Shown: positions 15,703-53,459, numbered from the stretch's first letter. The stretch: DNA of 64,000 nucleotides from Paragordius varius (GCA_964247055.1 OZ176051.1:1488001-1552000); one strand, 5' to 3'. Notes: generated from the sequence alone by a model not told the origin. Translations and numbers: made by a program.

Positions 15703-17620
15703 ATGGAAAAGTATGAAGATTGGGATTCTTTTTTCGAAAGAAATACATTTGATGGTAAACATTTTTTAAATTTTAGAAAAATTAATTGGTGATTTTGAAA
15801 CAAAACTCCCAAAAAATGGTTTTTTGTTTATAATTGTTAGAAATTTATCATTACGGATTATATTCTTTTGATTGGAAGCAAGGATTATCATTAGTTAAAT
15901 GTAATATATGTTGTAAGAAAATTTTACCACAAGCATTTTATTGGCATTTAGGTTAAATATTTTATTAATTATCAGAATGCGATCACCCAAATATTGTGAA
16001 TTTAAATACTCCCAATAATGAAGTAAAATTGTTTTTTATTAGCAGGATTTTAATTTTCCTCCTTTAATTTATACCAAACCCTCCATCAAACTTGTTCTGA
16101 AAAGAATCGATGAATCGCATGTTAATACTTTTGTGGAAAAAACTTTTAAAACGACTTCTTTTCAAATTTCTTCAACAGCAAACCATACTAAACCACTTGT
16201 AAACTTATTTGATGAATCTCTTTCCAAAACACATGAACCCAAAATTAGCGATTCCGTTTTACGCAATCCCTATAATGAATGGTTTAAATATCATTTTAAC
16301 CGTTTAAATAAACGAAGGTTAAAATTAGAACGAAAGATACAGAAACTTCAATGCCTTATTGCGAAAGATGAACAAAATTTAATGAGTATTCACGATTTTA
16401 TACCCACACAAATATTAAATAACGAGACTCAAATTCAATCAACATTGGCTTATACCACAAACCCCACCTCTCAGCAAATGATAAATCAATATTCAGCTCC
16501 TATCTATACCTTAACTTTGGATAAAGAATATAAAAATCATAAAAGAAAGAAAAAAGATTCCGACACAAACAGTTTTGAGAATAATCTCCATGTAAATATC
16601 CTACTACCAGATTTAGATGTTTGCAATAATAATCCTAATTTTTTGGGAAAAAATGTATCCGTCCAATCAACCAAAGGAGTGCCTAATAGCCTTCTTTCAA
16701 CCTTAAGCAATAATGCCAATCTTTGCATTAAAGATGATTTTTATTCGAGCATTTATGGTGATATTAAGGATCGCACGCCAATTGATATTGCAGGTAAATG
16801 TGTCATCACAAAAGAGTTTATGTCCCCCCATAATAGGAATACTTTGCATTCTTTTACTCTTAACACTTATGCGGATAATCTACCTAAAAGTAGTATCATT
16901 GAAATATCACCAAATCATAGTCCCAAATTACAAGATACGAAAGAACATTTCGTATGCAGCACTGCTTTAAAGTTGGAAACACATAAAGCATTTTTTCCAC
17001 ATTTTCCCGAACGAAATGGGAACCATGCTGAATTAAATAGCCCACCTTCACCTAAAAATAATTTTTCACAAAAAATCGGTGATAAACCCGTAAATCACAC
17101 CGAGACAATACTGCGTTCCTTATCCGCTTTAGATAACGCCGTAGGCCACCAGAGTAGTAGAGAATTAAACGACGCTGCTTTTACTGACGATTATTTCGCT
17201 TGTGGAATCACAAAAGAACCAATCACATTGCCTTACATTTTGCAACAAAGCAATAATAATTACATTAATAGGTTTGACTTTGTAAACAACACTTTCTCCG
17301 ACAAAATCAATAATCACAAGGACCATAATTTCTTTTCAAATGCACCGACGTCTACAAAAACAACAGCTGGTCATTTCAACACTTCTAATAAAAGCATTAT
17401 CCCAAATAATATGCAAAAATTAGAGTCTTCCTCCCTGCGTCAACATAATGAAGTGTCGATTCCCCCTACTATTTCATTCAAAAATGTGGTAACTGGCAAT
17501 GATTTAAGCTATAAACGCAAAAATGTCATTAAATTAAACACTTCCACATCATTGATAAATCCAAATTTGAAAAAGGATAACAAAAATAAGATCCATATCT
17601 TACCCAATGGAATGCATTAA
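15703..17620 (+). CDS. Uncharacterised ~601-aa protein with a partial PHD-like motif (CNIC-SFYW-H-LE-C) and a long low-complexity N/S/K tail
   Basis: Exons 15703-15754, 15777-15818, 15841-15912, 15934-15951, 15976-16022, 16046-17620 join in frame through five introns of 22, 22, 21, 24 and 23 nt into the ORF-track frame starting 16133. The N-terminus reads MEKYEDWDSFFERNTFDEKLIGDFETKLPKNEIYHYGLYSFDWKQGLSLVKCNICSFYWHLECDHPNI. The start at ATG 15703 is inferred because an in-frame stop lies just upstream. Confidence 0.7.
15755..15776 (+). other. Tiny intron, 22 nt (GTAAACATTTTTTAAATTTTAG)
   Basis: Phase 1, needed to keep the frame open, A at -8. Confidence 0.75.
15819..15840 (+). other. Tiny intron, 22 nt (GTTTTTTGTTTATAATTGTTAG)
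   Basis: Phase 1, needed to keep the frame open, A at -8. Confidence 0.75.
15913..15933 (+). other. Tiny intron, 21 nt (GTAAGAAAATTTTACCACAAG); 3n and stop-free, so optional
   Basis: Strong GTAAG donor and A at -8. Removal gives PHD-type C-x2-C-x4-H-x2-C spacing. It is not required by the frame. Confidence 0.5.
15952..15975 (+). other. Tiny intron, 24 nt (GTTAAATATTTTATTAATTATCAG)
   Basis: Contains an in-frame TAA, so it must be removed; A at -8. Confidence 0.75.
16023..16045 (+). other. Tiny intron, 23 nt (GTAAAATTGTTTTTTATTAGCAG) with a TAGCAG tandem acceptor
   Basis: Phase 0; joins to the 1575-nt terminal exon. A at -8 holds only if the distal CAG is used. Confidence 0.72.
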
Positions 17621-19321
17621 AAAATCGTCATAATATTATTTATTATATATGTTTTTCTTCAGCTCTTTTAGTGATTTCTGTAATGCGGATTGTATTTCAA
17701 CATACTCAATACAGTATCAATCTTCAGGGAGCTTTTTCTGTTTCGAGTAAAATATTTGTTAGTACAATAAAAATCAAAAAGTAATTATCTAAGTTTTTCA
17801 TCAAAGAACTACAATTCAAATAGAAAATTTGTCGATTTTATAACGCGATCAAATTTTTAAATTAATCTTATATAGCATACTTTATTAAAATTAATTTTAA
17901 TTTATTCACAATCTTTTAACAATTCTTATCTCATTGGTTATAAACAAAAAATTAATGAATGAAAATAATTAAATTTATAAAAATGCATAAAGTTCGGGCC
18001 GAAATATAATGTTAAAGTGCACAATGTTTTATTCTGTTTAACTTTATATATATCGTGTTTGACACTCCATTACATTTTGGGGTTATTTTATATCCCAGAG
18101 TCAATTGAAATTTGACTATATTAAAAAGTTAAGGTATAAAGCCGATAAATATGCTTTCTTTAGCCTTTTAGGCGCATTATACAATTTTTTTTAAAAAATA
18201 TAAAATTGTAAAAAATGTCATCTCACACTTTTTATAAATTTTAAATTGCTAATGTAACAGACAATTGAATGCATATTATGGCTAAAAAATAAATCAACTT
18301 TAAGGAACAGGCTATATATCAGCAAAAAGATATATTTTGATTTCAATATCAGCTGTTCGTTTTGATGGTGTTTTGGAGTTTTTCGACTCTAAAAGTCACA
18401 AAACTACAAAAAATATAAGCTTTTTTACCTAATATATCAGAACAATTTTTGATATTAAATTTTAACCAAAACAACTTTTAAAACTTTAGTTTATTTACAA
18501 ATTTGAGCTCTAGGATATAAAACTACCCCAAAAGGTAAACTAGGGCAAATTCATAAGGTAATGAAGTTTTACAGCGTCATATTACGTTATATAAATAGTA
18601 CCAAAATATATAACTGCATATATTCATTTGTTGGTTTTGAGTTTTCCTAATCAAATTTTTGAATTTAGTTTAGTCAAAACCACTAAGAATATCAAATTAA
18701 AACCAAAAATGCATTTAATTATCCTGACACAATTTCGATTTGTTAAGTTTTTACGCATATTCTTTAACTCTTTTGTTATATATTTTATAATATAGGAAGG
18801 TTATTATTCAATACAATCCTGCCTTTCCTTAACCAACGGTGCCGAAAAACTCAACAAAATTCTTGTTGCATTTATGTGATACATTTATTTTTTTATATGT
18901 AAGTTGGTCTACACTATATACTTAATCATTAAAATATTCGCTGTTTGTTTCGAAATTTTATCACGAATCATAACTCAATTCTCTTAATGGTTATTTTGTT
19001 TGTTTGTGAATGAAGATTATTACTAGTCTTAAAATTTGGATTTTGTGTCAGCCTTTATAAAACTTCAACAAAATATGTATGCTACTATGTAGTATCAGGC
19101 GTCAAATTATTAAAAGACATATATTAAAATTTTATGCATGTATGTATACTCAATGATAATATAATGTTTCTCTTGGATATTTAATGTATTACATAGTGAA
19201 TGAATAAAATTATTTATTTAATATGATTTATTTTATTAAAGCTTTTAAATGTTATATACATATATCAGCGATGGCTTATATTATCCTTTTTTAAATTTCT
19301 GAGTTCCAACTGCTTTGTATA

Positions 19322-19572
19322 CCATTTTTCAGTCAATAGCAACATTTTTCGACCAAACCCAAAATTTTTAAGCAAACTCAGCATTTTTTTACCAAAAGAA
19401 ACATTTATAAGCAAAAACAATTGAAAATTTTTACGGTTGCTTAAAAAATTGCCGTTTGGTTGAAAATTGTACCTTTGATTGAAAAAAATGTTGCGTTTGG
19501 ATTAAAAATGTTGCGATTACTTAAAAAATTGTTGCGTTTGGTTGAAAAAGTGTTACTTTTGACTGAAAATGG
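19322..19572. mobile_element. MITE with CCATTT-CAG ends, TATA flanks and ~21-bp internal subrepeats
   Basis: TATA|CCATTTTTCAGTCA ... TGACTGAAAATGG|TATA, with internal AAAAATGTTGCGTTTGG-like units in inverted arrays. Confidence 0.7.
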
Positions 19573-20327
19573 TATATCATTTTTTCGATTTAAGGCGAAG
19601 ATCCCACGGGTCTCTACCTCTTTATTCAGATACATTCAAACATTCTTTTGATGTATTATTCTTTTTTTCACCAAAGCTTTCGAATTCCCAAATAAGGTTA
19701 ATGTTAAATAAATAATAATTTGCCAAGAAAACAGCACTATAGAAATCTTTTCCCTGCCATACCTAAAACAATATTAAATTGAAATTATTTGAAAAATACC
19801 GATTATATTGCACCCAATTTAATAATGTGCTTTAGTTATGAAGTTTATCAAAAATCCCCGTTTCATGCCGCCAAATGTTTTTTGCTATATTTTGTTACAA
19901 AAACTGGCAAGTAAAAATATACGATACTAAAATAAATTTCCATTAATTTTAATATAATTTGGCAGCAATTTTTATCAATATCGATTTTCGCAATTATTCG
20001 AATAGTATAATTAAGGTTTTGGTAAAATTTAATCAAATGATATGTATATTTAAATATGATAGTATAAAAGCCCATATTCTTAAATAAAATATAATATGTG
20101 ATGAATTGTGAAATCGATCGTGTAAGAAAATACGGTGCCAGGTACAAAGCTATAATATTTTTATGAATTTTAGGACCTTTATTACTGATTTGATTTCGGT
20201 AGAATTGAGATATTAATAATCTAAGACGAAAATGAAGTTGCGCTAAAAACTTATAAATACTATTTCGGACATCAATGCTGAATCTTAATTTAGAGTTCAA
20301 CGGTGAACCCAATACTTTTATAATAAA

Positions 20328-20918
20328 CTAGCGTAAATATCGTGCTTCTACGCTGCCCGAGGAAATCTTTCGGACTTATGGGGGGGGGGGGGGGGGCTAT
20401 TTGAAAAAAGGGAAATAAAATGACTCACATATGTGAATTATTTTGAAACATTATTCAATAGCTATGATCTCATGGGAATTTCAAAACGGTGCATTCATAC
20501 TAATATATTCTTGGGCAATAAATAGATTCAAAAATTATTTTTGTGGACTTTGTTTTTTGAAAAAAATGACATTTTACGGGTGGAGCGGGTAAAAAGAGGG
20601 CCTACATTAAAAAAGCGAGACGACTATGTTCGGCGCAATTGTAAATAACAAAACAAACATTTAAATTTGAATAATCCAACACGTTCTTCGGAAAATTGTC
20701 TCAAAGACACGATTTTTGTGGACTTCTGTTTTCCAAAAAACCCGTTTTTTACACGGGGTGGGCTCGAACTAGGGGCCTAATTCCAAAAAAAGGGCGCAGC
20801 TATTGTCGGGTCATTCATTAATGATTATATTTTTTTGATATTTGGATTTGAATGGGTATACCGCTTTTCCGGTACCAGATCACAAAGCCAGCATTTTCCA
20901 TTTTTATAAATATATAGA
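20328..20918 (-). mobile_element. Non-autonomous Helitron, 591 bp
   Basis: On the minus strand it starts A|TCTATATATTTATAAAAATG and ends CTAG|T, i.e. inserted between A and T with no TSD. A degenerate hairpin lies near the 3' end and a G17 run is at 20380-20396. A homologous copy is at 63527 onward. Confidence 0.72.
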
Positions 20919-21522
20919 TTAGGCATCTATTGCAATAAGGCTACCTTGGAATAGCTATAGGCTGATTATTTGTTACAAAAAATATTGAATTTTATATAGC
21001 AGGAAAACAAAAATTTTAAATAATTACTATTAAAATAATAATAATTGGGGTGTTCGCAACATTTTAATACCCATATACTCCGTATGCCAAATTTAAAGCA
21101 AACGCTGCAAATATTTGATATCTAAATACATAAATAAATGGTCAAAACTTCAACACTATGTGATATATTTGTTATAAAAGTTTTAATTAGATATCATATA
21201 GGCTATATTAAGATGGCGTATATTTCCAAATATAAAACATTATTTAAATGACTGTTAAATTTTTAAATTGGGATATTTAGCTCAAAAATATTTTATTATT
21301 GAATTCTTTTGTAAATATCTTGATTTTCAAATATAATACTCCTCTTAAAATAGTGATAAATACAGGTAACTCGCATCGATTATGTAGAAAAAGTGTTTTT
21401 ATAATATTGAAATTTTTAATTTTAATTCCTCAAAGATACTTGTATAATTTTTAACAAATTTACTCCCTAAGATATTATATCCAATTAAATATCATTCCAA
21501 TAAATTGTGCCATACCATAACA

Positions 21523-21806
21523 CAGGCGTGGCCAACCTTTTTTTTCCGCGGGCTACTTTTTTGGAAGAAATTTTCACGCGGGTATGTATAAATATTAAGT
21601 ATTAAAATATCGCTATATATCTCTATTTACGGTATGGGGTGATTAGCTTAGGTCCTAAATTATTACAAAAAATAATTATTTTTGTGTAGTTATTTTTATA
21701 TGAGAAAAAATTTTTTATATAAAAATATTTTTTAAAAAATTTTAGGCTGTCACGTTTTAAAATGCGGGCACGAAGTCGACTGCGGTCGACCGTTCGGCCA
21801 CCCCTG
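21523..21806. mobile_element. hAT (Buster-type) MITE, 284 bp
   Basis: TIRs CAGGCGTGGCC / GGCCACCCCTG (10/11). The 8-bp TSD is CCATAACA / CCATAAAA (7/8) with central TA. Confidence 0.8.
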
Positions 21807-21859
21807 CCATAAAATATAAGAATTTTATTTTCTTCCCATATTGTTAAAAAACGAGAGCT

Positions 21860-22550
21860 TAAGATTCTAGCAAAAACAGGTTCTGATTCTAACCGTCTAG
21901 AAACCAGTCCGGTTCTTGTTTTACCTTCAAAATAACTGGTCCCACAGGTTTTTATTTTTAAATAATATTTATTGTTTCAATTATTATTTAAATCGATTGT
22001 ATGATAACATTTATTCTGGGTTTCCATCAAAATCAAATGACCACCATAATTTTAAAATTTGATGTTTAACTATCTTTTTTCATAAAAATTGATCATATGA
22101 TAACACTTTTTTCTCGAATCCGATTGAAAGGTATCACCATGTTGACAACTTTTTTAAATATCGATATACCCTATACAGGCATAATTTCTGAGAAGTAGTT
22201 TCCAAATTACTTGGTGCAATCATTTATAAAGTTGTATAAAGATTTCCTCCATAGATGCGATAGTATGCAACTTATCACTTATACATTTAGCTATATATTT
22301 TTCTAACAAATTATGATTTGATTTACAGTTGTTGATATTTTGGTTTATATTAAAATTGTGAAGAAACTGTTGTGTGATCTGATCTTTTTAATGAAGAATC
22401 AGTATCCAAAATGGAGCCGGTTCTAAATATAAACCGGTTTTGATTATATAATTTTTGTGGTAAATAGGGTGGCTTAAAACCGGATCGAAAAAAATGGAGT
22501 TGGAACCGAGGTGGTTTATGGACAGTTGGAACCAGAACCGGATTGGATCT
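21860..22550. mobile_element. Old element with degenerate terminal inverted repeats rich in GAACCGG/CCGGTTC
   Basis: GGTTCTGATTCTAACCGTCTAGAAACCA near 21880 matches the reverse complement of TGGTTTATGGACAGTTGGAACCAGAACC near 22515-22540. No clear TSD. Confidence 0.4.
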
Positions 22551-24239
22551 TATACTTTAAGTCAGACCTGTCTACCACAAAGGTTGCAACCCTTGAAAAA
22601 ATTCCCTCCGGTTCTATAGTCCAAAACAACTAATTAACATTATTTTTCTATAGGGATATTGTTATTCATAAAAATATTAAAGTCAACGCTATTTTTAGCA
22701 AAAAAACACTAAACAAAATTTTTATTTGGTTTTGCACGTGTTGATCCCTAATAGAATTTAAATAAATTTAAACTCTTTCAATATAAAAGCAAAAACGGTG
22801 GTAAGCAATGATTATGGTTTTTCGTGGTGTGGTTTTTAAGTAATTAAAACTCCGATAAAAAGATTTTTCAAGTAGAAATGGAACCAAGTTAATATCAACT
22901 CATCGAATACTGATCAAATCTTTTGGGAGAAATATTTATGTTTTGCCTTCAAAATTTGTTTTTAATTCAAGAAAAAATAAAATTTATTTTAAATTTATCG
23001 ATAAACATGGAACAAGTTAAATTTTGCATATTTTAATTAAACGCAATGGATAAGACGTGCCTAATTTTTTTATAATCATACCGTGTTGTTGTTTTATATG
23101 TTTTTTTGAATCTATTTTTACCTTTTTTCATAGTTGGGGACAAACATAACAGGTCATTGCTAAAATTAATAAAAAAATGTTTTTATTTTTATTAACTGCT
23201 TTTCTATCCACGCTGTACGTTGGACACACATTCGAAAACAATCAAAGTAACTTTTTTTAATTAAAATATTTATCATTAGCCTAAAATTTCTCGGTTCCAA
23301 AACAGAAAAAATGATTAATAAAACTGTTTAATTTATTAACGGTAATAAATGTAATTATTTGTCATAACTCGTATGAAGTATCATAAATGTTTGACAATTT
23401 TATATTATTGAAATTTTTTATTGTTTAAATTTTCGTTAAATATTTACCAAACCTCTATTTTAAAACTAGGCTAAATATTAATCTCTATTAAAATCAATGT
23501 GATCTCTCTCCATAAAACAAGTATTGGTATTGATAAAAAATACACATTTTATACTATTTTTATGATTAAATTAAAAGGTAGTTTATTGGAATATATAATT
23601 ATGATATAGGGAAATGAAAATTATCTTAATATTAAATTTAAAACGGTAGAAAAACCAAAGCTATTTGGGTTGAGTTACTCACCCTTAGTTTTAATGAGAT
23701 CAGTAAAAATGAGTTTATATTAACCTAATTTTGGTTCCACTGTGTTAAAAAGCCATTTTTCTGGTTTCACCTAAAACATAATCGAACTTTTCCATATTGA
23801 TTCCTATTTTGCGAAAAAATAAGTAAAAAATTTTTTCCTCTATTTTAGAAAATTTAAAACAGATACCAAAGATTATTTTTCTTGGACTTTTTTCAAATAG
23901 TCAAACTTTGTAAAAAAACTTGCGTAAGATAATTCATCAAATAAAGGTTAATTATAAATAATATATTTCAAAATAGAAATTATTATTTAGATTATTTTTT
24001 GGATATTTATTAAGCTGGACTGTTTTTATGCATGCTTAAGTTTATGCAATTCAAAATTTGAACTATAAATCATATTTATTAACTTATATATAGTCTGAGG
24101 TTTTCAGATGCCCCAATTTAAATCGAAGTGTTAATATATATTTACCATGTTTTAATGTACTGAAAGAAACGGTCCCAATTTAAGTTTTTGCTTCTATCCT
24201 AATAAATTATATAAATAAGTAAAAATGTCCAAATAAAAT

Positions 24240-24780
24240 TAATTTTTAAAAAGTTCCATATCAAACTACTTAGACACCATTTTTAACAACATTTTGGCAA
24301 AATATCGTGTTTATTTGATTCTAACGCTAAAGTTAAAACAAATATAATAAATTAATTCACATCCAAAATTGATAAAAACAGAAAAAATGTTTATTTTGTA
24401 TAATTTCTAAATTGCACACATGTCATATTGACTAAATTTTTACCTTTTAGTTTTAACTTAAAATAAGTAAATGAATTTTTTTTGTGTCGCGGTACATTAA
24501 TGTTATACAAGTGCAAACTTTTGTCATGGTTAAAATTCATTCCATCTTTTTCGAATTATTTAAATTTAAACAGGCCTGGGGTATCCAACGACCCCACTTT
24601 GAATCGAAGGACTAAAATGAATGTATTGTATCCATGTGTAAATAATTTTACACGGTTTTTTGAAAACGGCAATAATTTAATTATCGCTATTTTTCGCCTC
24701 TACCGAACGAATGTAAAAAACCAGGGCTTGGGTAAAAACCATTTTTGTAAACCGAAACCATAAGCTATTTTTCCTTTCTG
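24240..24780. repeat. Diverged interspersed repeat, copy 2 (homologous to ~10940-11480)
   Basis: Same colinear motifs as copy 1. Confidence 0.7.
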
Positions 24781-25736
24781 TTACCTAAATTTTTTCAAAC
24801 GGATCTAAAAAATATTTTTTAATATTATAAATAGCTTTTCTTTTGTAGATATTCATAAGTTTTTTTTCAAGTATAGCAGAAAAGTTGCATATTCTTGTAC
24901 GTATGTTTATATATTTGTAAAAATTGATATTATACGGACCTGTAAAAATATAAAGACAAAAATTTTTTTTCAAAAGATAACCATACTTTTTTACACCTTA
25001 ATATATCCTATGAAAACATTTAATTACAATCGTAAAATACATAATTGAATATACCAATTTACAATTTAATATTATACTTTGTAGTTTGAAACAATGAATT
25101 ATATTTAAAAAAAACAAGATTAAAAGAGTATGGTTGTATTTTAGAAAAAAATATTTGCCTTTATATTTTCACGTTTGTCCGTATAATTATTTTTACTGTA
25201 ATACGCCGGTGAATTTAAAAAAAAACTGATATCCGCATTTTAATAAAAAATAATGGAACCAAAAGCCTTCACTTCTGAACCGCCTTTTTCCAAAAATATT
25301 ATTTTGTGAACAAAACGGAATTCAAAAAATTAACTTAGAGCCCAAATTAAAAACTGTTTTGGTAACGATCCCTAAAAACTATTTATCCAACATAAATTTA
25401 CAAACATTGTAATAAGCGTTAACATTTAATCTTTATAAGTTAATAAGGTTTCTGTCAAACTTACAAGTATTTTGCAGTGTTAGTTACATTTTGAAACACA
25501 AGTAATATATCTAAGACTTTGAACATAACCAATGGTCAGTTATCCTGTTCCTAATGTCAAGTTATTGGAAATACCTGGTTCGTTTTCCATTTTTTTTAAA
25601 TTGCCTCGATATTTCGATTGATATAAAGCATCTTATTACCAAAACTTATTAAAATTCACCATTTCTTGTATTTTGAAAATTAGTTTTTAATTGATATTTC
25701 GAAACCCTATAATAACTACACACTTTTAGTAGTTGG

Positions 25737-26011
25737 CAGAGGCATAGCTAGAGGGGGGAGGGAAGGAGGGCTGATGACCGGGCTCTTTAGTTAAAGGGGC
25801 GCCGGATTTCAAGTAATTTTAAATTTATTTCAAAAATAGCTATTTAAAAATTATTATTTTGAATAATAAGTAAAAAATCACCCACTTATGAGTGGTCATG
25901 ACCACGGTTTAAATTTGATAATATTTTAAGATGCAAGGGGTCGCATGGAGGGCGAGGGGACGTCATTACGGATGAATTCCTCAGGCGCGAGAAATGCATG
26001 CTACACTTTTG
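25737..26011. mobile_element. Possible old hAT-like MITE upstream of the phosphatase
   Basis: GC-rich island starting CAGAGGCATAGCTAG and ending GCTACACTTTTG. The 8-bp flanks match only 5/8. Confidence 0.3.
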
Positions 26012-30698: not shown

Positions 30699-33600
30699 AT
30701 GGGTGTCCCGGCGTTTTTTCGTTGGCTTAGCCGCAAATATCCTTCAATTATAGTGTCTTGCATTGAAAATAAGGTATTTTTTATTGTAATCTCAGGATGC
30801 TAAACCAGAAGATATTCTTGGACCTAATCCAAATCAAATTGAATTTGATAACGTTTATTTGGATATGAATGGTATAATACATCCTTGTTGTCATCCCGAA
30901 TTCAAAGCAGCCCCTGAAAATGAAGATGAAATGATGGTAGAAATATTCAATTATATTGATCGGTTAATGGGAATTTTGCGTCCTAGGAAACTTCTTTACA
31001 TGGCCGTAGATGGTGTGGTAAGTTTAAATTATATACTATTTCATTCAAACTCAACAATTATTTTTATTTAATTTCATTATAAAAAATGTATTTTTACTTA
31101 GGCCTATAGAGCCCTTAAATGTTTACCAATAATTTTTAGTTTATTTACTTTGGGGATAATATTTAATTAAAACAAATTTTTTTAAACCTAAATTTTAATA
31201 TTATTCATTAAATCATATAAAAAATTCAATTTTGAGTCATTTTTACTGGTTAATAAGATAACATTAAATAACTCATAAAAACGGTTATAAATTATTTTTT
31301 AATAAAGTTTTAGTAATACAACATAATGAGTTTGAATGAGTTTGTACGGTAAAAATTAGGCATTTGTAAATTATAAATATATTAATGTATAAATATCTTA
31401 AGGCCCCTAGAGCCAAAATGAATCAACAAAGGTCCCGACGCTTTCGTGCCTCACAAGAAAGCGTCGAACACAAAGCTTGTCTTGCAAGAGTCAAACAAGA
31501 AATCCGGGCCCGCGGAATCGATGTTCCAGAAAGCAAAAAGAAAGGTTTCGATAGCAATTGCATTACACCAGTATGTCTTATTCTTTTAATATATGTGATA
31601 AATTAATTTTATGTAAGTATATAATAGAATTTTTCTTTCAAAAATGGTGAATTTTTTGTTTATTATAGTAATATATCTTTTATATTGGTTTTACTCATTA
31701 TAATGGGTAAAAAATGCCCACAAATTATCAAGTTTGTTTAAGATTTATATGAATTATAAATTATTATAACAAAACTAGGAAATCAGGAAAGTGATCATCA
31801 TGAGCCGATTAGTTTATAGGTACGTTCTTTTTCAAAAAAAATTCAAAAATTAGAAATGAAACACAAAAATTAAAAGACTGGTGTTATTTATCAAGAAAAC
31901 AATGTTATTTTGATTTTTGGTAATTATAGAAATATATATTCCTGTTTCATATAACAAAGCTATTAATTATATTTAAAAAATTTAGTTTTCCAAAATTATT
32001 TTTTTTTCACAAATGTTAATCTATAATTTCGATTATGTCAATAACATACTTTTAGGGAACACCATTTATGCACAAATTATCTCTGAGCCTTCGTTACTAT
32101 ATTCAAGATCGGCTCTCAAACCATCCCGCTTGGAAAAATGTTAAGGTTATTCTTTCAGACGCCAATGTTCCTGGCGAAGGGGAACACAAGATTATGGATT
32201 TTATACGCAAACAAAGAGGTTAGCGTTTTAGTTTTTTGAACGTAATTAAATTTTGTTATATACGCTTTTGATTAACACAAAACATTATTGTTGATTTGTT
32301 AAATTATTTAAATTTTTTTAAATTGGATTACTGCTATATAAGAATAGTCATTGTAAATATACATTTCTTTTTTTCTTTATTTTCCTGTATCTTTTGATTT
32401 CTTAAAATATGATAACTTAAATAGAGTAATGACACATGCCGTATTTTATCTATACATTCGTTAATATTTGGCGTGAAATTGATCTCAGCTTTGATTAAAT
32501 ATAAATATGCGAATTTTTTATTCTTAGCTCGACTTTTAATTATCAACGTGTTAAATGTTTTTTACTTACATAATTTAACTAAAGATAAATGCGTATAAAT
32601 ATTTATTCGCGCATGAAAATATGTAATGTATCATTTTTATTATCAAGGCCTAATTTGTTGATATAACTATACTAGAGACTTATGCGCTTGTTAATAATTT
32701 TTAGCATAAAAAAATATTTTTTTTTTGTGATTTTTAGCAAATCCAAACCATGATCCAAATACGCGACATTGTCTTTGTGGAGCAGATGCCGATCTTATAA
32801 TGTTGGGCTTAGCTACTCATGAACCCCATTTCACCATTATAAGGGAAGAGTTTAGACCTCAAAATAAACCTTGCGATTTGTGCGGAGATAAGGGTTAGGG
32901 TCATTTTTTTAAATCACAGTAAACTATTGAAAATAAGCAGTTAAATTATTTAAAACTTATTTTTTCTGTGCTTATAGGGTTGTAAAATTAAATTAAAAAT
33001 GTTACCCTTTATATTATAAACTCCAATCATTTAGATAAAAGCCAATAATAAAAAGCAGTCTTTTTAGTTGTTTTGTGTAATAGACCTTTTTAACGAAAAT
33101 TGAAGCTTTTCACATGTTATACCATATAATATTAATTTAATAACCAACACATATTTCATTTCATGCTATAATTTTTAGGGCACGAATTGAAAGATTGTAA
33201 GGGTGAAGCATTATTGTTGGCTAATTCACAGAATGTGGAGTCTTCATCATTCGATGAAAGCGATAATGATATTTTCAGTCCTGCTTCCCATGAAGGTTAA
33301 ATTTTATTTCCATTTTTTCAAGGATTTCTGTAAAACTAAAAATGTTTTTTTGATATATATGTTTCCATCTTAAAATATTTAGACGCTCTGTAAATTACAT
33401 ATTTGTTTTATTTTAATTCCAGTCGAAAATAATTTTTATGCCACCGATTTTTTGCAAAAAAATGGTTTAAATTTATTGTTCTTGGTTTTTAAATTTTTTT
33501 TCTATAAATAAGCTTATATACATAAACCTATTAGTTAATATTTATGCTGTGCAATCTTTCTCTGGATTATATAAAAAATTTTAATTTTCATGATTAAATA

Positions 33601-39987: not shown

Positions 39988-40041
<54 letters not shown>

Positions 40042-41763: not shown

Positions 41764-44700
41764 TTATTCGCTTTCAATGTATTTAAAGGGTTCAGGTGGG
41801 GCGGGTTCTTCCCCTTCGTCTTCCTCCGTAGTTTTTGCAGTTGATGCTAAAAAGACATAAACTTTTCAATAATTATTTATGGATTGTTGATTTTAGAATT
41901 GTGATTGCATTTAAATACCAAGTAAACGGATAATAAGACCTTATATTTAATCTCTAAAATTGTAATAAAATCATATTTTTTCATTAAATTTCAATAATAT
42001 TGTTATAATAGTATAATACCAAAACAAATACTCGATGGGTTAACTTTATTTAGTGTAGTGCACTTTAATAATTTTTTCGAGTATTCATAAAAATAAATTA
42101 TTAACAAACTTGATATGATGGGTACAAATTCTTCAGGTACATTTTCCGTTTTATCATACAGCATGATAAAACCACCTTCCTTAATCTAAATAAGCAAAAG
42201 TTAAAATTTAGTAAAATAAAACGATTAATAATTATCAAGTAACACATACCGATTTCAAAGGTGCATATCTACAATCTGCGGGTAAATTGACAGTTTTCAA
42301 CTATAAAAAAATATTTATAATGTATAACAGTAAGATTTAAATTATAAAGACAAGACGTTAAAACATAGACAATAATTTTTTGCCATATTATTTAAAACCT
42401 CGATTATTCCCATATAAATTGGTTACAATTGTAAAATATATAATTAACATATCTGTTTCATACTTTGCAGTTAAAATCATTTATTTTTAATAAGTTCGAA
42501 TAAGTATAAAAGTCTTTTGAAAAAAATACTATATGTCTTTGTATATTTACATTTTGTATGTAAAATTTTAATTTTAATTCATATAATATATATACCTGTT
42601 CAGGCATAACTCTAGCAGGATTATGTAATATCGTGTGATGATTTGAATGTTTTAAAACATTTTCATTATTCGCGTTTTCTTTCACGGTTGGTAAGGCGGT
42701 CGTAGAGTCCTTTTTATCATCTTTTTCCTGTTATATACAATCAAAATTTGAAATATAATGACAAAACAGATATTATAAACGGTTTTGTTTTATAAAGAAA
42801 AGCATTAATATATTTCCTATTTCGCACCAATCGATAATTATAAAGAAGATCAAGGTTTAAAAATATGGCTTTCTCAATTTTACTTTTTAAGTTTTTTTTA
42901 TTATAAATTTCAATTGTTAGTGTAAAAGAATTAACAACCTTTTTTGTAGCCGCGGGAGAATCGGATAGTTTTTTCTTTTTCGCTTCATTTGCTGGAACAG
43001 GGCTCAAAATACCAACATTTTCCTTAAAATAAATTTTACAACACACAATTAATAATCTTTAATTGACATTTAAAATTCTTGATGTAAATATAAATCTTGG
43101 GTAATTTTGGTGGTTTTAAGTTGATAAAAATATATTAAGTCCTTTTGTTAAAATATAATTAGACAAGTCTTACTTTTTTATTTGAAAGCTAGATAATCAT
43201 TTACATTAATAGTTGCTAAAATGACAAAAATTTAATGTCAAATACTAATTAATTGCATTTTAGGATAATTTACTTTTTAATTAAATCTTTTCAGCAAATC
43301 AACAATAAAGAAATTATTGGTGGCAAAAGATTAAAGATGAGGATTATTCAAATTAACTATTAATTATGCAACTTAAAAACCAGATATCATCTGATATATA
43401 AATATTACGGAATTTTAGGGTTAAATGACACATTTTTTAAAATATGGTATTGGAGAAAAAATATTTTACATAAAAATAATTATTCTTTTGAACCTTCTTA
43501 GAGCTCTCGATATTCTTAGCTGGCTGGACCATTTGAGAAGTTTGAGGAACAACCTCCATAATGTGATCTTCGACAGGTTGAATCGCAGTTTGTGCGCGGG
43601 GGGGAACTTCTTTTTCGCTTGAGGTTTTGCCTTCTTTTTTATCGGACTAACAAAAAGATTTACGGAGATAAATGTACATTTTAATTAATTTAGTAATGTA
43701 AAATCACTATATATTTAAATCTCCTCTCCTATACATAATATATGGCTAATGATCTGTATGCTCCTTTAAAAAATTTTTAAATTTTAATTGATTAGGTTTT
43801 ACCCAATAATATAATCCACAAATGTATCTATAGGATTGATTAAATTATATTGTTCATTAATTTAAGCACACAATTACGGTAAAAATTAACTATAAAATGA
43901 TAACTTAAAAACTAGGATCTAATTTAAAAATCGGAAAACCACATGATGATCAGAATAAACTCATTATTTTATTAATTCTCCTTTATAAAAAATTTTTATG
44001 AAACCACTAAAAATATGCGCATACTGTTTTTTCGTCTTTACCAGTCAAACTACCATGATGACCAGTTTTCCCCTTTGCATAACTCAAAACTACGGTCGTA
44101 AGTCGCGTTTTTTCCTTAGTTTTGGGAGCTTCTAACATTGGTGGATACGCATAAGTCGTTGGTTTAGCGTTTGAAACGAAATCAATTTTAGGCATCTAAA
44201 AAACATAAATGTACAGTATAAATCAGCAATTAAAATACCATTTTAGACCTTTTTAGAAAATTTTTCTTATGATAATTTACTTTTCTTCATTACATATATT
44301 TCAAGAACTAACCTTTAAGTCCGCGTTAAGTCCTACCAAATGTGTCGGTTTGAAAGAAAGCGAAAGGAAATGTGAAAAAGGATACCAAAACCAAAATTGA
44401 GTGAATATCATTGTCCCGACCACAGCCAAAACATCCACATGTTGAGAATCAACGCCAGTTTTGTAATTTATGGTTGCGTTACGACCACCTAAAATATTTA
44501 ATGCGTAAGAATTATAAAATAAATTCATAAATACAACTAAACTTCGCTTAAAACTTTAATTAGTTAATGTTGTCTTTTTTATCATACTAAAAGCCAATAC
44601 TACAGAAATGAAAAAATGAATAAAAACAAAACATAAAAACTGAGAGACATATATTTTTACATAAAAAGCTAGCGATAACTTTGAATACCTAAAAATGATA

Positions 44701-47700
44701 TTACAATAATGTATTATTGTACCAATTTACATCTATATTCCCTATTTGCAACCAAACCAATGATTAACTTTTAAACATCAATATAAAATTATGGCTCTTT
44801 TTTAAAATTTGTTTATGTTTCTACGTATTTTTACCACAATTTCTAGTGTATGTTGAGGACGGAAAACCTATAAATGAATGGTTATTAATGCGATAAAAAT
44901 TAATAAGTTAGGAAAATTTCCAAAATAATTATGCATTTACATAATTAACCCGAATTTTTCACATCTTTTGTATTCAAAAAAAATCAGTAAATCCGTTAAT
45001 GCATTTTAAAAGTTTTCTCAATTAATTGTACCTGCATCGATGATACCCTGGGCAAATATTGCACCAAACTTTGCCATAATTTCTTCGTGTTTATCGCTGA
45101 CAATTTTGGCATACTTTTCACGGAACATAGTTGACTGAAAACATGTTAAATATAATTTAATAAAAAGATAAATTTTTGAACATGACAAGTTTTAAATGTT
45201 TGATTAGCTCGCTAAAAGAAAAATCGGTCTGAGCGCTTAAAAATGAGTCTTGTAAGGACATAACTAATTTCTATAAAAATTATGTTTTAAAGGATTAATA
45301 ATCAGGTTAAACCAATAATATTACAATGTTTTGAACATAATTTAAAGGCCATTAACACTTAATAAAATATTTGAATTTTCACATTTGTAAATATATTTAA
45401 ACACTAATTTTTAATTAAAAGCGTGATTACCTTGGGTTGCGTCACTTCATTTTGTTGAATGAGAATCATTGCAGATGCTATGAGAGCGCCCTGTCTTACA
45501 TAATTGGTTCCATCATCAACTAAAGGTTCCAACATACTAATTGCCTCCTAATATAAGGATTTACAACGGATATGTTAAACAAAACCCCATTAGATATGCA
45601 GTAAAACTAACTCTTAAAGAAAAAAAACAGTTTCACGAAAGATTTTCTATAACTTTTGCCCTTAATTTAATTTCTTCAATAATATTTTTTTCTGTTTTGG
45701 CATGTATAACTGCTGTATAAATTACCATGCATTATTGTTATTTTAAAACATTTGTATTTTTTAATTTAAATTATTTTTTTGGAATTTATATTTGTAAATT
45801 TATATTTTTCAATGAAATGTGGATTGTGTCAAACGCAAACTTCAATTATTGCATTTTAGTTAAAAAGTTATAAGGACCACCTTTAGAATTGAAAAGTGTC
45901 ATTAACCCCGTAAGAAAAATACTAATTTACAAATGTTTACTACATTGAAATATTTCAAGTTTAAGAATAATTTTTTTATTTTAACGCAATATATCTCACA
46001 TTTTTTTATCTTAAAAATCAAAGAGAAGTATTTATATACTTTCAATCCAGTTCCTGCACATGATATCCCTAAGGCTAAAGCAGCGCCATATCTTACATGG
46101 GGATTATAACTTTCAGACAAAAGACTCACAATACTCGGGCATTGTTCGGGTGTTCTTAAATACAAAAATACATTAAAAATAATTCTATAGACAAAGTAAG
46201 ACTGTAATTTAAAAAAGACACCCATATATTTTTAAATTTTCGTTTTTTAAAAAAAAGGGTCGCTGCGAAAAGAGGATTAAAGATAAAAATTGGTAATTCA
46301 CTCAATTATATATATAATTATATAATTATGTAGGATTAGTCATTTTGGAAAGTAATGTTGTCTTTTATAAAATTAAATGTAGTTTTTAGCTTTTATGTTA
46401 CTAGAACATTTTAATTTTTATTGTATATTTGTTTTAAAATAACTGGTTAAATGCATCTGAATATTTTCAAGAAATTATAACCAGATCATTTGGCAAATAC
46501 GATGTTAAAATCGGTTAAAAAGTTTTAAAATTATATGGTATTGACAACATAAAAACCTGATTATAAATTTAAAATCTAACAATTCTTTTTTGCAATATAA
46601 TTACATTTTATAATAATATTGATTTAACCATGGAAAAAACATAGTGAAATTTTTGAAAGGTTATTTTTATAAGGGGTAACACTCATCCCTATTTACAAAA
46701 ATTTATACTGTATAATAATAATAATAATAATATAAAGAGAGTTAATTTTTTTAATTTTTTTTAAAATAAATAAAAAAATATTATACTGGAACAATAGAAA
46801 TCCAATGCAAGTGACAGCAGAACGCTTGACATCATCATTAACGTCGGAAACCTGCATTAAAAAATAATTAAATATATTTCAGACCAAAAAAGAGCATTTT
46901 TCACAGTAATATTAATATAAATTAATTTTATAAAGTGCAACTCTCGTTTAATTAAAATATATGACAGACTCAAACTAGTTTTACAAGTATAATCAGATAG
47001 GTCTATACTCTAAACAAAGATTTAAAATATGGTTTAATGTCAAAATAATTATTCTTTCCCTTTTTACAGGTATAAAAATTACACAAAACAGAAAAAATAA
47101 AAATATCGAATTTTTCAAAATAAAATATCATTCCAATAATAGGAATAAAGTTAACAGTAAAACATATCATTTTTCACAATTATCATATAGATTAAATAGA
47201 AAAATCAAGGATTACAAATTGCTTATGGTATATTAATAGAATCGGTAATATTTATGTAGAAATAGTTGTTGAATTCTGTAAGATTTTTAGTTTAAGTTTT
47301 GTTTATTACAATTATAAATCAATGAATATGGTTTGCTCTGAATATTTTTTTCTAACTTTCTTAAATTTTTAGAGTCTCGTCATGGATTTCAAAATAAGGA
47401 AATTAATATTTTATATTTCACAATTATTTACACAATATATCATATCCAAATATAAAAACTCTTCAATTTTTTATCTATCAAATTTAAAAAAAAAGGGGGG
47501 GGGTGGGGGTAAAAAATTACAGCGATATGAAGGAGTCGTTTTAGGGCAGAATTATTGGCAGTTCCACAATAAGCCGTGGCAATGACATAAACTGCACATC
47601 GTCTCAGTAAGGCATCCTTCTCACCCAACAAAGTTTCAATCAGCGTTTCAGCTTGTTCCATCCTACCAAATTCAAGCAAAGCTATCCCCAGAATAAGACC

Positions 47701-50700
47701 ACGCGTTATTTTCTCGTGTCGCGTTTCTTTAGCATACTAACATAATATTTCATTTAAACAAAAAAATAAAAAATGTGTAAAAATTGTCAAATTAAAAAAT
47801 TGATTATATATTAAATTCACTTATGTTTTATTTATTTGTCAATATGCAACTGTTTAAAAAAAACATATTTTTAATTCTATATGGTTTGAAAAACTATAAT
47901 AATAAAATTGTATTATTTTCAAACGATCATTAGAGGTTGTATATATATATATATATTTATTCTAAAAAAGACATAAAAATTTATAATTATGTGTTTAAAA
48001 AAAATATTCTTCAGAATGAATATAGTTTAAAAAAATAAAAAGCTGGCTATCAAATGATATATTTTAGTAATAATATTATACTGTAATCATGTCATCTAAA
48101 ACCATTGAATGATCGGAACCGAGCATAACAAGACCCATCGCTAAGCCAGCAGCTTCGCCTTTAAATATTATTCACATTTATAAAAAATTAAATTTTGAGC
48201 TTTGGAAAAATAAAAATATTCCGATAATAATCGATAATAAATTTGTGTTATCGAAATATCATATTTTAGATTATATAATTATGTATTTGTTAAATAATTT
48301 TGGTATCTATTTAGTGGTGGCATCGATATTAAAGATAAACCTTAAAATTCTAATTTATGTTCGATTTGTAGGATGAATATCAATTTTACTGAAATAATAT
48401 ATTATTTAATTATTTTTAAAATGAAATCAATGCCAAAATATAATAAAAAATACGTTTCTCAATTTAGAAAAAAACCATAAATTCTAAGTTTCCATGTCTA
48501 TAAAAGCCAAAATATAATTTTTTTTAATTTTTCCAAAATTACCAATAACGGCATCATCTTGATATAATTGAGCTTTTAAAACTTCATAAACATCCATTCG
48601 ACAAGTCGAGATGGCAGCTAATCCAAGACCCAAACAGGCCCCATGTTTTATAATCTGAAATTTAAAAATTGCAAAAATGCAGAATTTTAATAATATGTTA
48701 AAAAAGATAGTTTTCTTATAAAAACAGCCATGCTTTTTTAAAGCCCAATTGTAATATTATATATGACAAATTTCTTTCAACAATTCCATATTTCAAAACG
48801 CAGTTATTGGAGATATAAATATTTAAAAGCTTCATTAAATGTTTCTTTTCTTTATGTAATTGTATATATAATTAGTCATAAAATTATTAATGTTAAAAAT
48901 TATGCATATACTTCAGATGTTGCGTTATTCAATTGTTGAATAAGGTATGCAATCACATTAGATCCGTGATTTACATTGATCAAACCTAAATAATGTAAAA
49001 ATTTGAGAATAAATTATTTTTATAAAATATTATGAAATACCAAATTTACAAAAATACTCTATTTATTCCCATATTTTTGGTAATTTTTGAATTTATAATA
49101 TAGTTTGATAAATAAATCTTTATAAAAATTTTATATTTAAGATGATTTTAATTTAGCTTACTTTAAAATTCTGAAGATTAGTTTTACAGATTTTGTTATA
49201 TCAAATGAATCTTTTTCCAAAAATTCAATGCTAAAGTTACCAAATCTTACTACTAAAAACTGATTTTCTTAAATGACTTTAAAAAAATGTTTTAAGAAAA
49301 AAAAAAGACCAATGGCATAAAGACTTCCGCCCTCAGAATATGGACTGCTGCTGGAATTCGAACTGGGTCCACTAGAAGAAGTCCCACTTTTAGGCAAATA
49401 CGTTGACATAATGTTCAAGGCTTCTTTAATATGTCCCTGGTAGAAAAAAAATATTTATAAAAAATATATTTAAACCCTATATAAAATAATTATGGACCCA
49501 CTATTTTATAAAAAATTCATCATTTCATAAGGTATAATTTTTTAAGTGATAATTGTTTATGTTAAATATACCATCACCACAAACTTTAATTTGTGCGTTT
49601 TATGCAACCTCAAAAAATTAATTAAATTATTTTATTTTTATCAAATATCTATGATTAATTACTTATATAATTCCATTTTTAACAGAAAAAATAATTTTAA
49701 ACCAGTTTAAAAAAAAACAGTAATTCATATTATACTTTGTGGACCACACCCAAACTGGCTGTTGCAGTAAATTTGGCCCAATTAGTAGCTTTTGCTAACC
49801 AATCCAAATTATTTCTAAAATGTATATATAGATAGAAAACAAATTATCACTATTGAAAAAGTATATTAAGTAATTAAAATTAAATTATCCATTCCTCTAA
49901 TTTGGAAAAAATAACTCCCTTTTAAAACTTATGTAAGCCTATATATTTAGTTAATAAATAACCATATGGCATAAAATTAATCAAAATCTTTTCTTCAATG
50001 AAAAAACCTTCAAAAAATTTGAAAAAAATTTCTCAAATAACCTCAAAAATTTATCATTAGTGGTTCCACAATTAGCAAAACCATGAGCTATGATAACTGC
50101 ATTGTGACAAATGCTATTTCTAACACTATCTTTGCTATTCTTAAGGATTTGTTGGTCAGTTCGATTGTTTTGAATCAAGAATTGAAGCTCCAATTGAACA
50201 GGCAAATCACCTGTTAGCAAGGTATCCAAGTGTGTTGCGTGTTCTCGATTCAATTTACAACTCGATAAACTATCCTGCGCAAAGACCAAGGCGATAAATA
50301 AAATTGATACTTAAAAGGCCGTTTTTTTGTTCAAAAACAGTACAGCAAATTTTCACTAGTAAAAACTCAAAAAACAGTTATATTAATTTAAAAACAAAGT
50401 TATTTTCGTACAAAACACACTACTTTATTTTAATGGAATAAGGCGATAAATAAAATTGATACTTAAAAGGCCGTTTTTTTGTTCAAAAACAGTACAGCAA
50501 ATTTTCACTAGTAAAAACTCAAAAAACAGTTATATTAATTTAAAAACAAAGTTATTTTCGTACAAAACACACTACTTTATTTTAATGGAATAAGGCGATA
50601 AATAAAATTGATACTTAAAAGGCCGTTTTTTTGTTCAAAAACAGTACAGCAAATTTTCACTAGTAAAAACTCAAAAAACAGTTATATTAATTTAAAAAAA

Positions 50701-53459
50701 GAATTATTTCCGTACAAAACACAATACTTTATATTAATGCAATAAGGCGATAAATAAAATTGATACTTAAAAGGCCGTTTTTTTGTTCAAAAACAGTACA
50801 GCAAATTTTCATTAGTAAAAACTCGAAAAACAGTTATATTAATTTAAAAATAGAGTTATTTCCGGACAAAACACACTACTTTATTTAAATGGAATATTTT
50901 TTTAAAAAAGATATAGATTAACCAATGTTGCTTTTAACAAAAATGTTATTGGTTTTCTTAAAAAAAGATGTTATCTATGATTGAAAAATATAGTTTATAA
51001 TGAATAGTTACCAATATTATTAATATATGTAGAATTTTTACAATAAATACAGAGAAGCTAAAAAATAAAAAAAGAAATAATTTTAATATGAAATTCGTAA
51101 AAATTATTGCTAATTTAATTTATTAATTACCCTAATTGCTTGGGTGGGTGATTTTGTTCCATTACAGATTTCTTCCTTTATTGTTAAGGAATCGTGAGGT
51201 TGTTGCACCCTAAAACAATATAATCAGATATTATTTTTATATACAATCTACAATTCAAATTCACCTTTGAACAATTTATTTCACTCTCGAACAATTCAAA
51301 TTCACCCTAAAATAAATTATATATTTTTAAAATTAAACTATTTTTAAATATTTTTGAAAAATAAATTTATAATGTAAATCAAAATATATTGAAAAAATAT
51401 AAACTATGCCATAAAGATATATATATTAATAATGAGTTATATTGGTTCGAAAACACATAATTATATTTAGGGTAAATTTGAACTGTAAATGGTATATAAA
51501 ATATAATATTATCATAATATTCATTATTTTGAAGCAAGATATTGATACCAACGGTTTATTATTAATTAAAAGTTGAATAAATCCATATAAAAATTATAAA
51601 TTAAACATATTATCGATTCTTATAGTAAGATTACTCCATATTTTTAATATGAAAACAAAACGATTAATGTCAATTTGACTTTCTTTAATTTCTTTGTTTT
51701 GTTTCTATTCAATTGCACTCTAAAATACCATTTTTTATCAGTGTTTAAGGAATAAAATTAATATGGATAATAAATGAAATAAATATATACATTGTAGCAT
51801 TTGGTGATTCCTGTTCAGTTGTTAAAACGATATTAGGGTCGTGTTCGTCTTTGGACAAAGTTTTTACGATAACTGGCGATGTTTCAGATTCCATAATTTC
51901 TGTATTTCCAGTTCCCCCCTCTAACTCCATAGAATCATCTAGAAAGATTTTATTATAATATATTTTTACCACACTTATTATTAAAAGTTTATAAAAATTA
52001 AACAAAAAATGTAAATGGAGGATAAAATGAAAACTCTATTTTATAGACCTTGACTTACTTAAGTAGGATATTGTTTTGAGTTGCGAAACAAGAACAGATA
52101 TAAATTTACGACTAAATTTTATTTCAAAATAGAAATCAGAAATTTCAAAATCAAAAAAATTACCCTCATGAGACAAAAGAGTAGAAGACGGTTGTGATTT
52201 ATCGATTGGCAAAAGTCCTAAATGCGATCTGACGCGTTTCAAGAAACCTTGCGTCCCACTGGCATAAACATCCAATGCTAATTGATATGCCATTAAAACA
52301 TCCTTCTAAACATTGATTTTACATGGAAATTTTAATTAATATTGTATAAAAATTTGTGATTTTCGTGCTTGAAAACATTTATAAGCATATTTTTTACATT
52401 GAAAATATTAGGATTTATGAAGTTATAAACTTTAAAAAAGAATAAATACCTTATTTTTAGATTTGACAAGTTTCAATATGATATTGGCCAAAGATTGGGG
52501 ATCATCCAAATATATTAAGCACTGTTAGTTATATATATTTACATATAATGAAATGAAAAATTTTGCATATATTTATTAAAAGGTATGGTATTTTAAAAAG
52601 TTACCTGGCAAATATTAATGTAATCGGGTATATTTTGACTCAAATAAATATTAACAAGTTCCCTCAAAACAATTTTTCGAAATTGGAGATTTTGAGAGAA
52701 GGCAATAGCAAGTTCAAAAGTGTGATTTAACATTTCTTGAACATTGTCCTGAAATGATAAAAAATTTAAATTTTAAGCATATAATAATATTTAATATCTA
52801 AATAAATTAAAATAACCGATTCTATCAGAGCTTTTTGAATAATATCCAAACGCCTGGCTTCGAGTGCAATGCCTATGGCCTAATATACATAAAAAATTAT
52901 AAAGAATGATACGATGAAAAAATATTTATAATTAAATTTTCTTACCTGCTTATATTTTCCATCATCAATACACCTTTGAAACATCCCATCAACCAAATTT
53001 ATAGTGCGTGGATCAATCGTATCATCATTATCATGAGTTTGACGAGAAATTATATAACAATCAAGACATTTGGCTAAAATTAAAATAAAATTTACAAATC
53101 ATAGTTGTGACATATTCACTTGACTCATTTATATTAAATAATTTTCCGGCTTCAAGAGCATAATTAAGAGCTTCACCATATTCTCCCAAATTATAATAGA
53201 CTTTGGAAACAACTAAAGCAGCCAACTCCCTGTATTTAAAGTTTGTATCTTCCTGCAATATTTCACTAAAAATTAAATCTAATAAAACATTTTTGAAATA
53301 TATTCAGATATCTCGGCCCAAAATTCATCCACTAAACTATTCAATTTTAAGAGAGCATAATGACGAAGTTGAATATCTGGCTCGTCTAGCATGGATATAA
53401 TCCCAGCTTTAAATAATTATAAAATCTAAACCTGACGTAGAAAGCAAAAGCGATGCCAT
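41764..53459 (-). CDS. PSMD1: 26S proteasome regulatory subunit RPN2, 29 exons
   Basis: [65 protein letters not shown] repeats, [50 protein letters not shown]-terminal [14 protein letters not shown]. Intron lengths 5' to 3': 25, 23, 22, 66, 68, 83, 144, 225, 581, 856, 227, 299, 324, 257, 384, 345, 669, 632, 492, 296, 543, 117, 378, 471, 211, 295, 64, 263. Confidence 0.97.
50288..50895. repeat. Tandem array, 4 x 152 bp, in PSMD1 intron 10
   Basis: Units start AAGGCGATAAATAAAATTGATAC at 50288, 50440, 50592 and 50744. Copies nearest the exon are near-identical and distal ones diverge. Confidence 0.95.
51244..51492. mobile_element. Degraded copy of the 59507 MITE in PSMD1 intron 9
   Basis: Right end GAACTGTAAATGG|TATA, AACAATTCAAATTCACC subrepeats, and a shared core AATAATGAGTTATATT-GTTCGAAAACACATAATT. 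Confidence 0.75.
53074..53095 (-). other. Tiny intron, 22 nt (GTAAATTTTATTTTAATTTTAG), PSMD1 intron 3
   Basis: Joins ..TMI-S-KCLD, aligning with conserved IIAKCID; A at -8. Confidence 0.9.
53266..53288 (-). other. Tiny intron, 23 nt (GTTTTATTAGATTTAATTTTTAG), PSMD1 intron 2
   Basis: Joins ..EYISK-I-EILQED, aligning with conserved VDKIEVLYED; A at -8. Confidence 0.9.
53407..53431 (-). other. Tiny intron, 25 nt (GTTTAGATTTTATAATTATTTAAAG), PSMD1 intron 1
   Basis: Joins ..STS-A-GIISML, aligning with conserved TSAAGIISLL; A at -8. Confidence 0.88.

Follow-up and report, generated by a model that had tools for sequence, protein, structure and literature searches.

A candidate branch adenosine eight bases from the 3' end of 21-25-nt introns in three genes of the hairworm Paragordius varius

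The searchable literature, the latest being Hadjez et al. (September 2026; PMC13644364), treats as unexplained how an animal spliceosome recognizes an intron shorter than 30 nt, and the same question is raised by a 64,000-nt stretch of genomic DNA from the hairworm Paragordius varius (GCA_964247055.1 OZ176051.1:1488001-1552000; the whole stretch is referred to here as the window, and positions are its coordinates, counted from its first letter). Three genes of this window, an orphan gene, XRN2, and PSMD1 (RPN2), contain nine tiny segments of 21-25 nt that begin with GT and end with AG (9/9 for both), and in all nine the eighth base from the 3' end, position -8, is an adenosine. An earlier note on this DNA had quoted the tails of nine such segments, with A at -8 mostly in a TTTA or TAAT context and 13-17 nt between the 5' splice site and this A; all nine were located, their last eight bases were identical to those quoted, and both the context and the spacing proved correct. 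The nine segments are very probably real introns, and the interpretation favored here, with a probability of about 0.6, is that they would be spliceosomal introns of the U2-type GT-AG class, as small as such introns can be, with A(-8) as the putative branch adenosine, or possibly the base at -7 in two of them. The three genes and the nine segments are the following:

Orphan gene: 15703-17620, plus strand, with a 525-codon exon starting at 16046
Orphan gene intron 1: 15755..15776, plus strand, 22 nt, GTAAACATTTTTTAAATTTTAG; A(-8) at 15769
Orphan gene intron 2: 15819..15840, plus strand, 22 nt, GTTTTTTGTTTATAATTGTTAG; A(-8) at 15833, within TAAT
Orphan gene candidate intron 3: 15913..15933, plus strand, 21 nt, GTAAGAAAATTTTACCACAAG; A(-8) at 15926, within TTAC
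Orphan gene intron 4: 15952..15975, plus strand, 24 nt, GTTAAATATTTTATTAATTATCAG; A(-8) at 15968, within TAAT
Orphan gene intron 5: 16023..16045, plus strand, 23 nt, GTAAAATTGTTTTTTATTAGCAG; A(-8) at 16038
XRN2: 30699 to ~40 kb, plus strand, assigned by homology
XRN2 intron 1: 30774..30795, plus strand, 22 nt, GTATTTTTTATTGTAATCTCAG; A(-8) at 30788; its TAAT suits a branch at -7
PSMD1/RPN2: 53459 down to ~41767, minus strand, assigned by homology; span ~11.7 kb
PSMD1 intron 1: 53407..53431, minus strand, 25 nt, GTTTAGATTTTATAATTATTTAAAG; A(-8) at 53414
PSMD1 intron 2: 53266..53288, minus strand, 23 nt, GTTTTATTAGATTTAATTTTTAG; A(-8) at 53273, within TAAT
PSMD1 intron 3: 53074..53095, minus strand, 22 nt, GTAAATTTTATTTTAATTTTAG; A(-8) at 53081; its TAAT suits a branch at -7

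The prediction of four of these introns (XRN2 intron 1 and PSMD1 introns 1-3) is confirmed by homology. Searches with XRN2 exon 2 gave no match above 79% identity, and the matches served as references for exon mapping. A tblastn alignment with the best full-length XRN2 homologue (P0109) places amino acids 1-25 at 30699-30773 and amino acids 35-106 at 30805-31020, with the boundaries 30774-30795 being the choice of junction scoring. The XRN2 gene of another eukaryote (L003:9861-10168, an ENA ERZ25069711 contig of 38% G+C) is interrupted at the same codon, after residue 25 and in phase 0, by a 50-nt intron, so that the intron position is old, and the tail of that intron, GTATTTAG, is without an A at -8. 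In PSMD1, intron 1 provides an in-frame link from the ATG exon (53459-53432) to exon 2, which corresponds to human PSMD1 residues 7-44; exon 2 itself lacks an in-frame ATG ahead of its conserved GIIS, and the intron is needed because the only in-frame ATG must be joined to GIIS. Exon 3 corresponds to human residues 46-101, and intron 2 is fixed to the base because residue 45 is a split codon between the two aligned exons. Exon 4, examined by eye, reads on as AKCLDCY after human residue 101, matching AKCIDHY at that site of the human protein. The Protein Data Bank (PDB) alignment of exon 4 covers only exon residues 17-42, against human residues 124-149, and the boundary of intron 3 is slightly less firm than that of intron 2 because this match reaches only the distal part of the exon.

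The orphan gene has to be approached through its reading frame, and its 525-codon exon needs an upstream exon because it is open for more than 100 codons ahead of its first methionine. All ATG-initiated paths into the exon at 16046 through GT-AG introns of 18-30 nt were enumerated, and eight were found, with 15755-15776, 15819-15840, 15952-15975, and 16023-16045 common to 8/8. The segment 15913-15933 is optional because its length is a multiple of three, it has no in-frame stop, and the frame is open either way, and it is the least certain of the nine introns; if retained, it would add CKKILPQ to the orphan protein. The intron at 16023-16045 ends in a tandem TAG-CAG acceptor (16040-16045), of which the upstream AG would give T at -8. 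Alternative splicing is possible at both places, with a difference of 7 residues at 15913-15933 and of 1 residue at 16040-16045. The region 15725-16362 is present whole in independent DNA contigs from two samples, one of which is ~4% diverged, and is free of insertions and deletions (indels) in both, so that the segments are real DNA and not assembly errors. In the diverged sample (X4/X5, under the same species label), it differs by 28/638 substitutions (4.4%) and 0 indels, nearby non-coding stretches have 9-24 gapped bases, and the lengths of the orphan-gene introns appear constrained. The sample nearest to the assembly (X1) is heterozygous at many sites, and nucleotide diversity is very high.

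The adenosine at -8 is constant over intron lengths of 21, 22, 23, 24, and 25 nt, and A is found there in 4/4 of the homology-verified introns and in 5/5 of those chosen by reading frame. When the nine introns are aligned at the 5' end instead, the best column reaches 6/9. The alternative that survives best, although still unlikely, is that the branch A keeps its distance from the 5' splice site, the behavior described by Hadjez et al. for myxobolid Myxozoa and Dicyema, and that -8 is an accident of lengths that are mostly 22-23 nt. No animals but these two groups were previously known to have introns below 30 nt, and such an anchor is on record for them (PMC13644364); counted from the 5' end, A occupies position 15 in 6/9 of the introns and position 16 in 6/9, and PSMD1 intron 1, the longest at 25 nt, has a good TAAT that puts an A at position 15 from the 5' end (-11 from the 3' end). 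With the four 22-nt introns set aside, however, the remaining five have A at -8 in 5/5 and at position 15 in only 2/5, which, in these small numbers, points to the 3' end as the anchor.

The interior of the nine introns is strongly AT-rich (A 0.33, T 0.57), and another improbable explanation is chance: a small AT-rich sample in which A makes up ~33-48% of interior bases, with the column picked post hoc and the nine not fully independent, five of them being in a single gene. A set of 230-275 AT-rich GT..AG decoys taken from this window, likewise 21-25 nt long, has A at -8 with a frequency of 0.44-0.48, and 9/9 at one pre-chosen position would have a probability of ~1e-3. When nine length-matched decoys were drawn 200,000 times, a column of invariant A anywhere in -14..-3 appeared in 1.1% of the draws, one under either anchor in 2.0%, and one of any base in 2.9%. 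The last figure, the 0.48 reached by AT-rich decoys, and the uncertainty of one or two of the nine, either as introns or at the 3' end, all leave some room for chance, but the corrected p remains at or below 0.03, the A is found alike in the homology-verified and in the reading-frame-chosen introns, the flanking T(-10) and T(-6) described below are present, and the longer introns of the same genes differ. Spliced alignment mapped 18 non-tiny introns (11 in XRN2 and 7 in PSMD1), of 66-1593 nt, the shortest after the tiny class being 66 and 77 nt. A is at -8 in 5/11 of those in XRN2 and 1/7 of those in PSMD1, or 6/18 in total, which is the background level, and the comparison with 9/9 in the tiny introns gives a Fisher p of 0.0011. 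The earlier note had counted A at that position in 7 of 18 long XRN2 introns; only 11 non-tiny ones were mapped in that gene, so that this count is confirmed only in part, but the rate agrees, and longer introns are at background across both genes.

The long introns of XRN2 are not uniform along the gene. Its first five introns (22, 385, 485, 519, and 285 nt; 30774-33178, plus strand) have A at -8 in 5/5, with the tails AATCTCAG, ATCTTAAG, ACTTTTAG, ATTTTTAG, and ATTTTTAG, and the later mapped introns of the gene in only 1/7. A proximal branch may be tied to a position near the 5' end of the gene and not to intron size alone.

The sequence around the A gives the tiny introns a common 3' end. 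Aligned at the 3' end, the columns read T in 7/9 at -11, T in 8/9 at -10, T in five and A in four at -9, A in 9/9 at -8, T in five, A in three, and C in one at -7, T in 8/9 at -6, and mostly T or C from -5 to -3, followed by AG, and A is absent from the columns -10 and -6. The combination of T(-10), A(-8), and T(-6) is present in 7/9 of the introns compared with 8-11% of AT-rich decoys (binomial p ~1e-6, post hoc). The branch consensus of animals is yUnAy, as in the title of PMC2367711. With the A at -8, the core U, two bases upstream of it, is found in 8/9 and a pyrimidine at +1 in 6/9, so that the sequence from -11 to -7 fits this consensus, the evidence from the flanks being weak in such T-rich introns. 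In 8/9, no other AG intervenes between the A and the AG in use, and the 5' splice site amounts to only GTW. Other adenosines are confined, in most of the nine, to the first 6 nt of the intron or to the 5 nt next to the AG.

This context also bears on a further and still less probable account, in which A(-8) is part of a protein-binding signal or of a longer 3' splice-site signal, for example the upstream edge of a short U-tract bound by U2AF-like factors, and the branch lies elsewhere, at another A or at a non-A base. A T-rich run follows the A in most of the introns, and the long XRN2 introns 2-5 end in A-(Y/T)5-AG, where the branch could equally lie further upstream. A U2-type branch nevertheless requires a bulged purine upstream of the AG, few other adenosines are suitably placed, and the yUnAy register fits -8. 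That some of the nine, above all those of the orphan gene, are false introns that stem from wrongly modelled coding sequence, from an alternative start, or from a pseudogene is very improbable: the orphan gene has no homologue found, its "PHD-like" label comes from one C-x2-C-x4-H-x2-C stretch without other zinc ligands, 15913-15933 can be read through, and a chance path of tiny introns into a given acceptor arises in ~8.5% of decoy trials (random or genomic), but a path with at least four introns does so in only ~1%, the large exon requires an upstream start, the region is indel-free in the diverged sample, and all five orphan-gene introns share the 3' motif of the four homology-verified ones.

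If A(-8) is taken as the branch adenosine, as favored here, it would sit in a degenerate animal-type branch motif, in the register y(-11), U(-10), n(-9), A(-8), y(-7), and the five mostly T bases from -7 to -3 would be a vestigial pyrimidine tract that leads into the first usable AG. The branch position would be fixed because 21-25 nt leave no free space: the branch would lie at the minimal 8 nt from the 3' splice site, and all variation in length would be absorbed upstream, in the 13-17 nt that lead from the 5' splice site to the A. Branch site and acceptor would then form one fused element of ~10 nt, T-W-A-Y-T-N3-AG, in which A(-8) may act as the nucleophile and U2 may pair with the T-rich flank. 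Were U6 to occupy +1..+6 and U2 the six bases upstream of the A, a linker of 1-5 nt would be left, so that the pairing of U6 and U2 would have to be shortened to suit a lariat loop of 14-18 nt, or recognition would have to be sequential. The earlier note had inferred a severe steric problem for a standard spliceosome, and a steric clash of this kind has already been argued for Stentor (PMC9505925). The earlier note had proposed a branch point set by a ruler from the 3' AG in place of a U2 consensus; the A is indeed anchored to the 3' end, at -8 across 21-25 nt, whereas the proposal that distance replaces the consensus is unsupported because the yUnAy register is present. A ruler and a weak consensus without room to move are inseparable by sequence, as the introns are ~60% T.

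Several points weigh against the branch-point interpretation. The nine introns come from three genes, with five in one orphan gene without homologues. A look-up of sequencing runs that contain this DNA returned none recorded as RNA, and the four runs aligned to it consisted of DNA contigs. One of them, 15913-15933, is optional, and the acceptor of another, 16023-16045, is ambiguous. At ~60% T, the pyrimidine and U positions of the consensus are not significant when taken singly (8/9 T, p ~0.07). XRN2 intron 1 and PSMD1 intron 3 suit TAAT better with the branch at -7, and PSMD1 intron 1 carries its second good TAAT at -11. In addition, the set was not enlarged within the window. A scan for 17-40-nt GT..AG segments that join open frames gave 372-424 matches, mostly spurious; in these window-wide reading-frame scans, GT-AG was in no excess over decoy pairs, namely the other 255 pairs of boundary dinucleotides, and the codon-usage score showed no excess over decoys. 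A motif-guided scan of the window recovered 7/9 of the introns and no convincing new member.

A branch A at a fixed position in tiny introns is already known from Stentor and Trichomonas, and what is new is the lineage together with the 3'-anchored behavior. The validated Type B introns of Trichomonas vaginalis are 25 nt long and read GTWYWD{7}TCTAACAAACAG, with the branch A of CTAAC at -8 and T at -10, and Type A introns have the 3' motif ACTAACACAYAG (PMC13548475, citing Vanacova 2005 and Deng et al.). A distance of 8 therefore lies within a validated 25-nt intron design, and the likeness extends to the length of 25 nt, a weak GTW, and the register T(-10), A(-9), branch A(-8), Y(-7), as well as to the enrichment of several introns near transcript 5' ends. 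The Trichomonas motif is a near-invariant 12-mer with CTAAC, whereas in the hairworm nine the A stands as the sole invariant base of the motif, between flanks rich in T and A: CTAAC is found in 0/9, C at -11 in 0/9, and C at -7 in 1/9. The nine introns work like the fused motif of Trichomonas and Giardia but are not members of it. Trichomonas is, moreover, an intron-poor protist, and the tiny introns described here stand beside many long ones in an animal.

In Stentor coeruleus, the putative branch A is base 10 of a 15-nt intron or base 11 of a 16-nt one, corresponding to -6 (PMC9505925). The fixed-position branch A for which the earlier note had cited Stentor was thus right in kind, at -6 and not at -8. 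As in the hairworm, this A keeps its distance from the 3' end whatever the length and has a weak U-rich branch consensus; the recognition sequences of the small nuclear RNAs are conserved in Stentor, and its sharply looped lariat presents a steric problem like the one that the earlier note had raised. The two differ in the size of the loop, 10 nt with A at -6 in Stentor and 14-18 nt with A at -8 here, and in that essentially all introns of Stentor are tiny, whereas those of the hairworm are a subclass and share their genes with introns that range from 66 nt up to 1.6 kb.

Among animals, introns below 30 nt have been reported only in myxobolid Myxozoa and in Dicyema japonicum (Hadjez et al., 2026; PMC13644364). 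Their introns contain two or three weakly conserved adenosines, which lie further from the AG in longer introns (PMC13644364). Those of the hairworm resemble them as animal GT-AG introns in a range of 20-27 nt, with a 5' signal of GTa, almost no pyrimidine tract, and adenosines upstream of the AG that are proposed as the branch, U2-dependent splicing being inferred. They differ in that the adenosines of myxobolids and Dicyema shift with intron length and the single A of the hairworm stays at -8 over 21-25 nt, a contrast that is weak at n=9, and in that tiny introns are the genomic median in those animals and are found here at gene 5' ends beside long introns. Human introns place the branch at a greater distance from the AG than the 8 nt seen here, and a pyrimidine tract separates the two, where the hairworm introns have only 5 nt.

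The window as a whole is of 27% G+C and uses the standard genetic code, and the similarity of its PSMD1 and XRN2 marks it as animal DNA. The assembly of Gordionus montsenyensis has a reported G+C of 26.93%, and introns are not mentioned in its paper. Apart from the three genes above, the window contains the following features:

hAT-family transposase open reading frame (ORF): 663-2492, plus strand, intact, 609 codons, with a Dimer_Tnp_hAT domain
FG-rich, nucleoporin-like long gene: just downstream of the hAT transposase ORF
Histidine-phosphatase (His_Phos_2) ORF: in the window
C2H2 zinc-finger gene: follows PSMD1

The first introns of the zinc-finger and His_Phos_2 genes are long on inspection. 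No homologue was found in searches with the 525-amino-acid exon of the orphan gene or with His_Phos_2, an exact look-up of the hAT transposase gave no match, and Rfam had no match in the window. The C-terminal exons of PSMD1 are the ORFs 44010-44195, 44304-44555, 45407-45547, and 41767-41865 (FTQFWFW...), and a separate minus-strand gene at 44.2 kb was considered and rejected, the ORF being an internal PSMD1 exon. The same convergent pair, XRN2 on the plus strand followed by RPN2/PSMD1 on the minus strand, is present in L002:10001-15644 (a Logan SRR31089926 contig), which is compact eukaryotic DNA, apparently intron-less, and does not belong to a close relative, because its RPN2 blocks are only 40-68% identical. 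Short high-copy repeats at 14600-15000, 18146-18539, 19328-19721, and 20313-20500 reach a summed contig depth of tens to several hundred times that of flanking single-copy DNA in 4/4 DNA runs, with inverted-joint contigs at 18147/18507 within the repeat 18146-18539, and are probably MITE-like (resembling miniature inverted-repeat transposable elements).

If A(-8) is the branch, this genome would provide a clean natural experiment, in which the same spliceosome would remove from one pre-mRNA both introns of 22 nt, with a loop of 14-18 nt and a tract of 5 nt, and introns of kilobase length. A broader view, possible but put forward only tentatively, is that a bilaterian with normal long introns has evolved 5'-end introns of 21-25 nt with a fused, 3'-anchored T-W-A-Y-T-N3-AG and a branch 8 nt from the end, convergent with Trichomonas and Giardia and unlike the two other tiny-intron lineages of animals, and that the same proximal branch may also serve longer 5'-proximal introns, such as XRN2 introns 1-5, which would amount to two recognition modes of one spliceosome in a single transcript. 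A 3'-anchored branch would provide a simple rule for spotting tiny introns missed by standard gene finders, as well as a probe of the minimal distances that the animal spliceosome can accommodate between the 5' splice site and the branch and between the branch and the 3' splice site.

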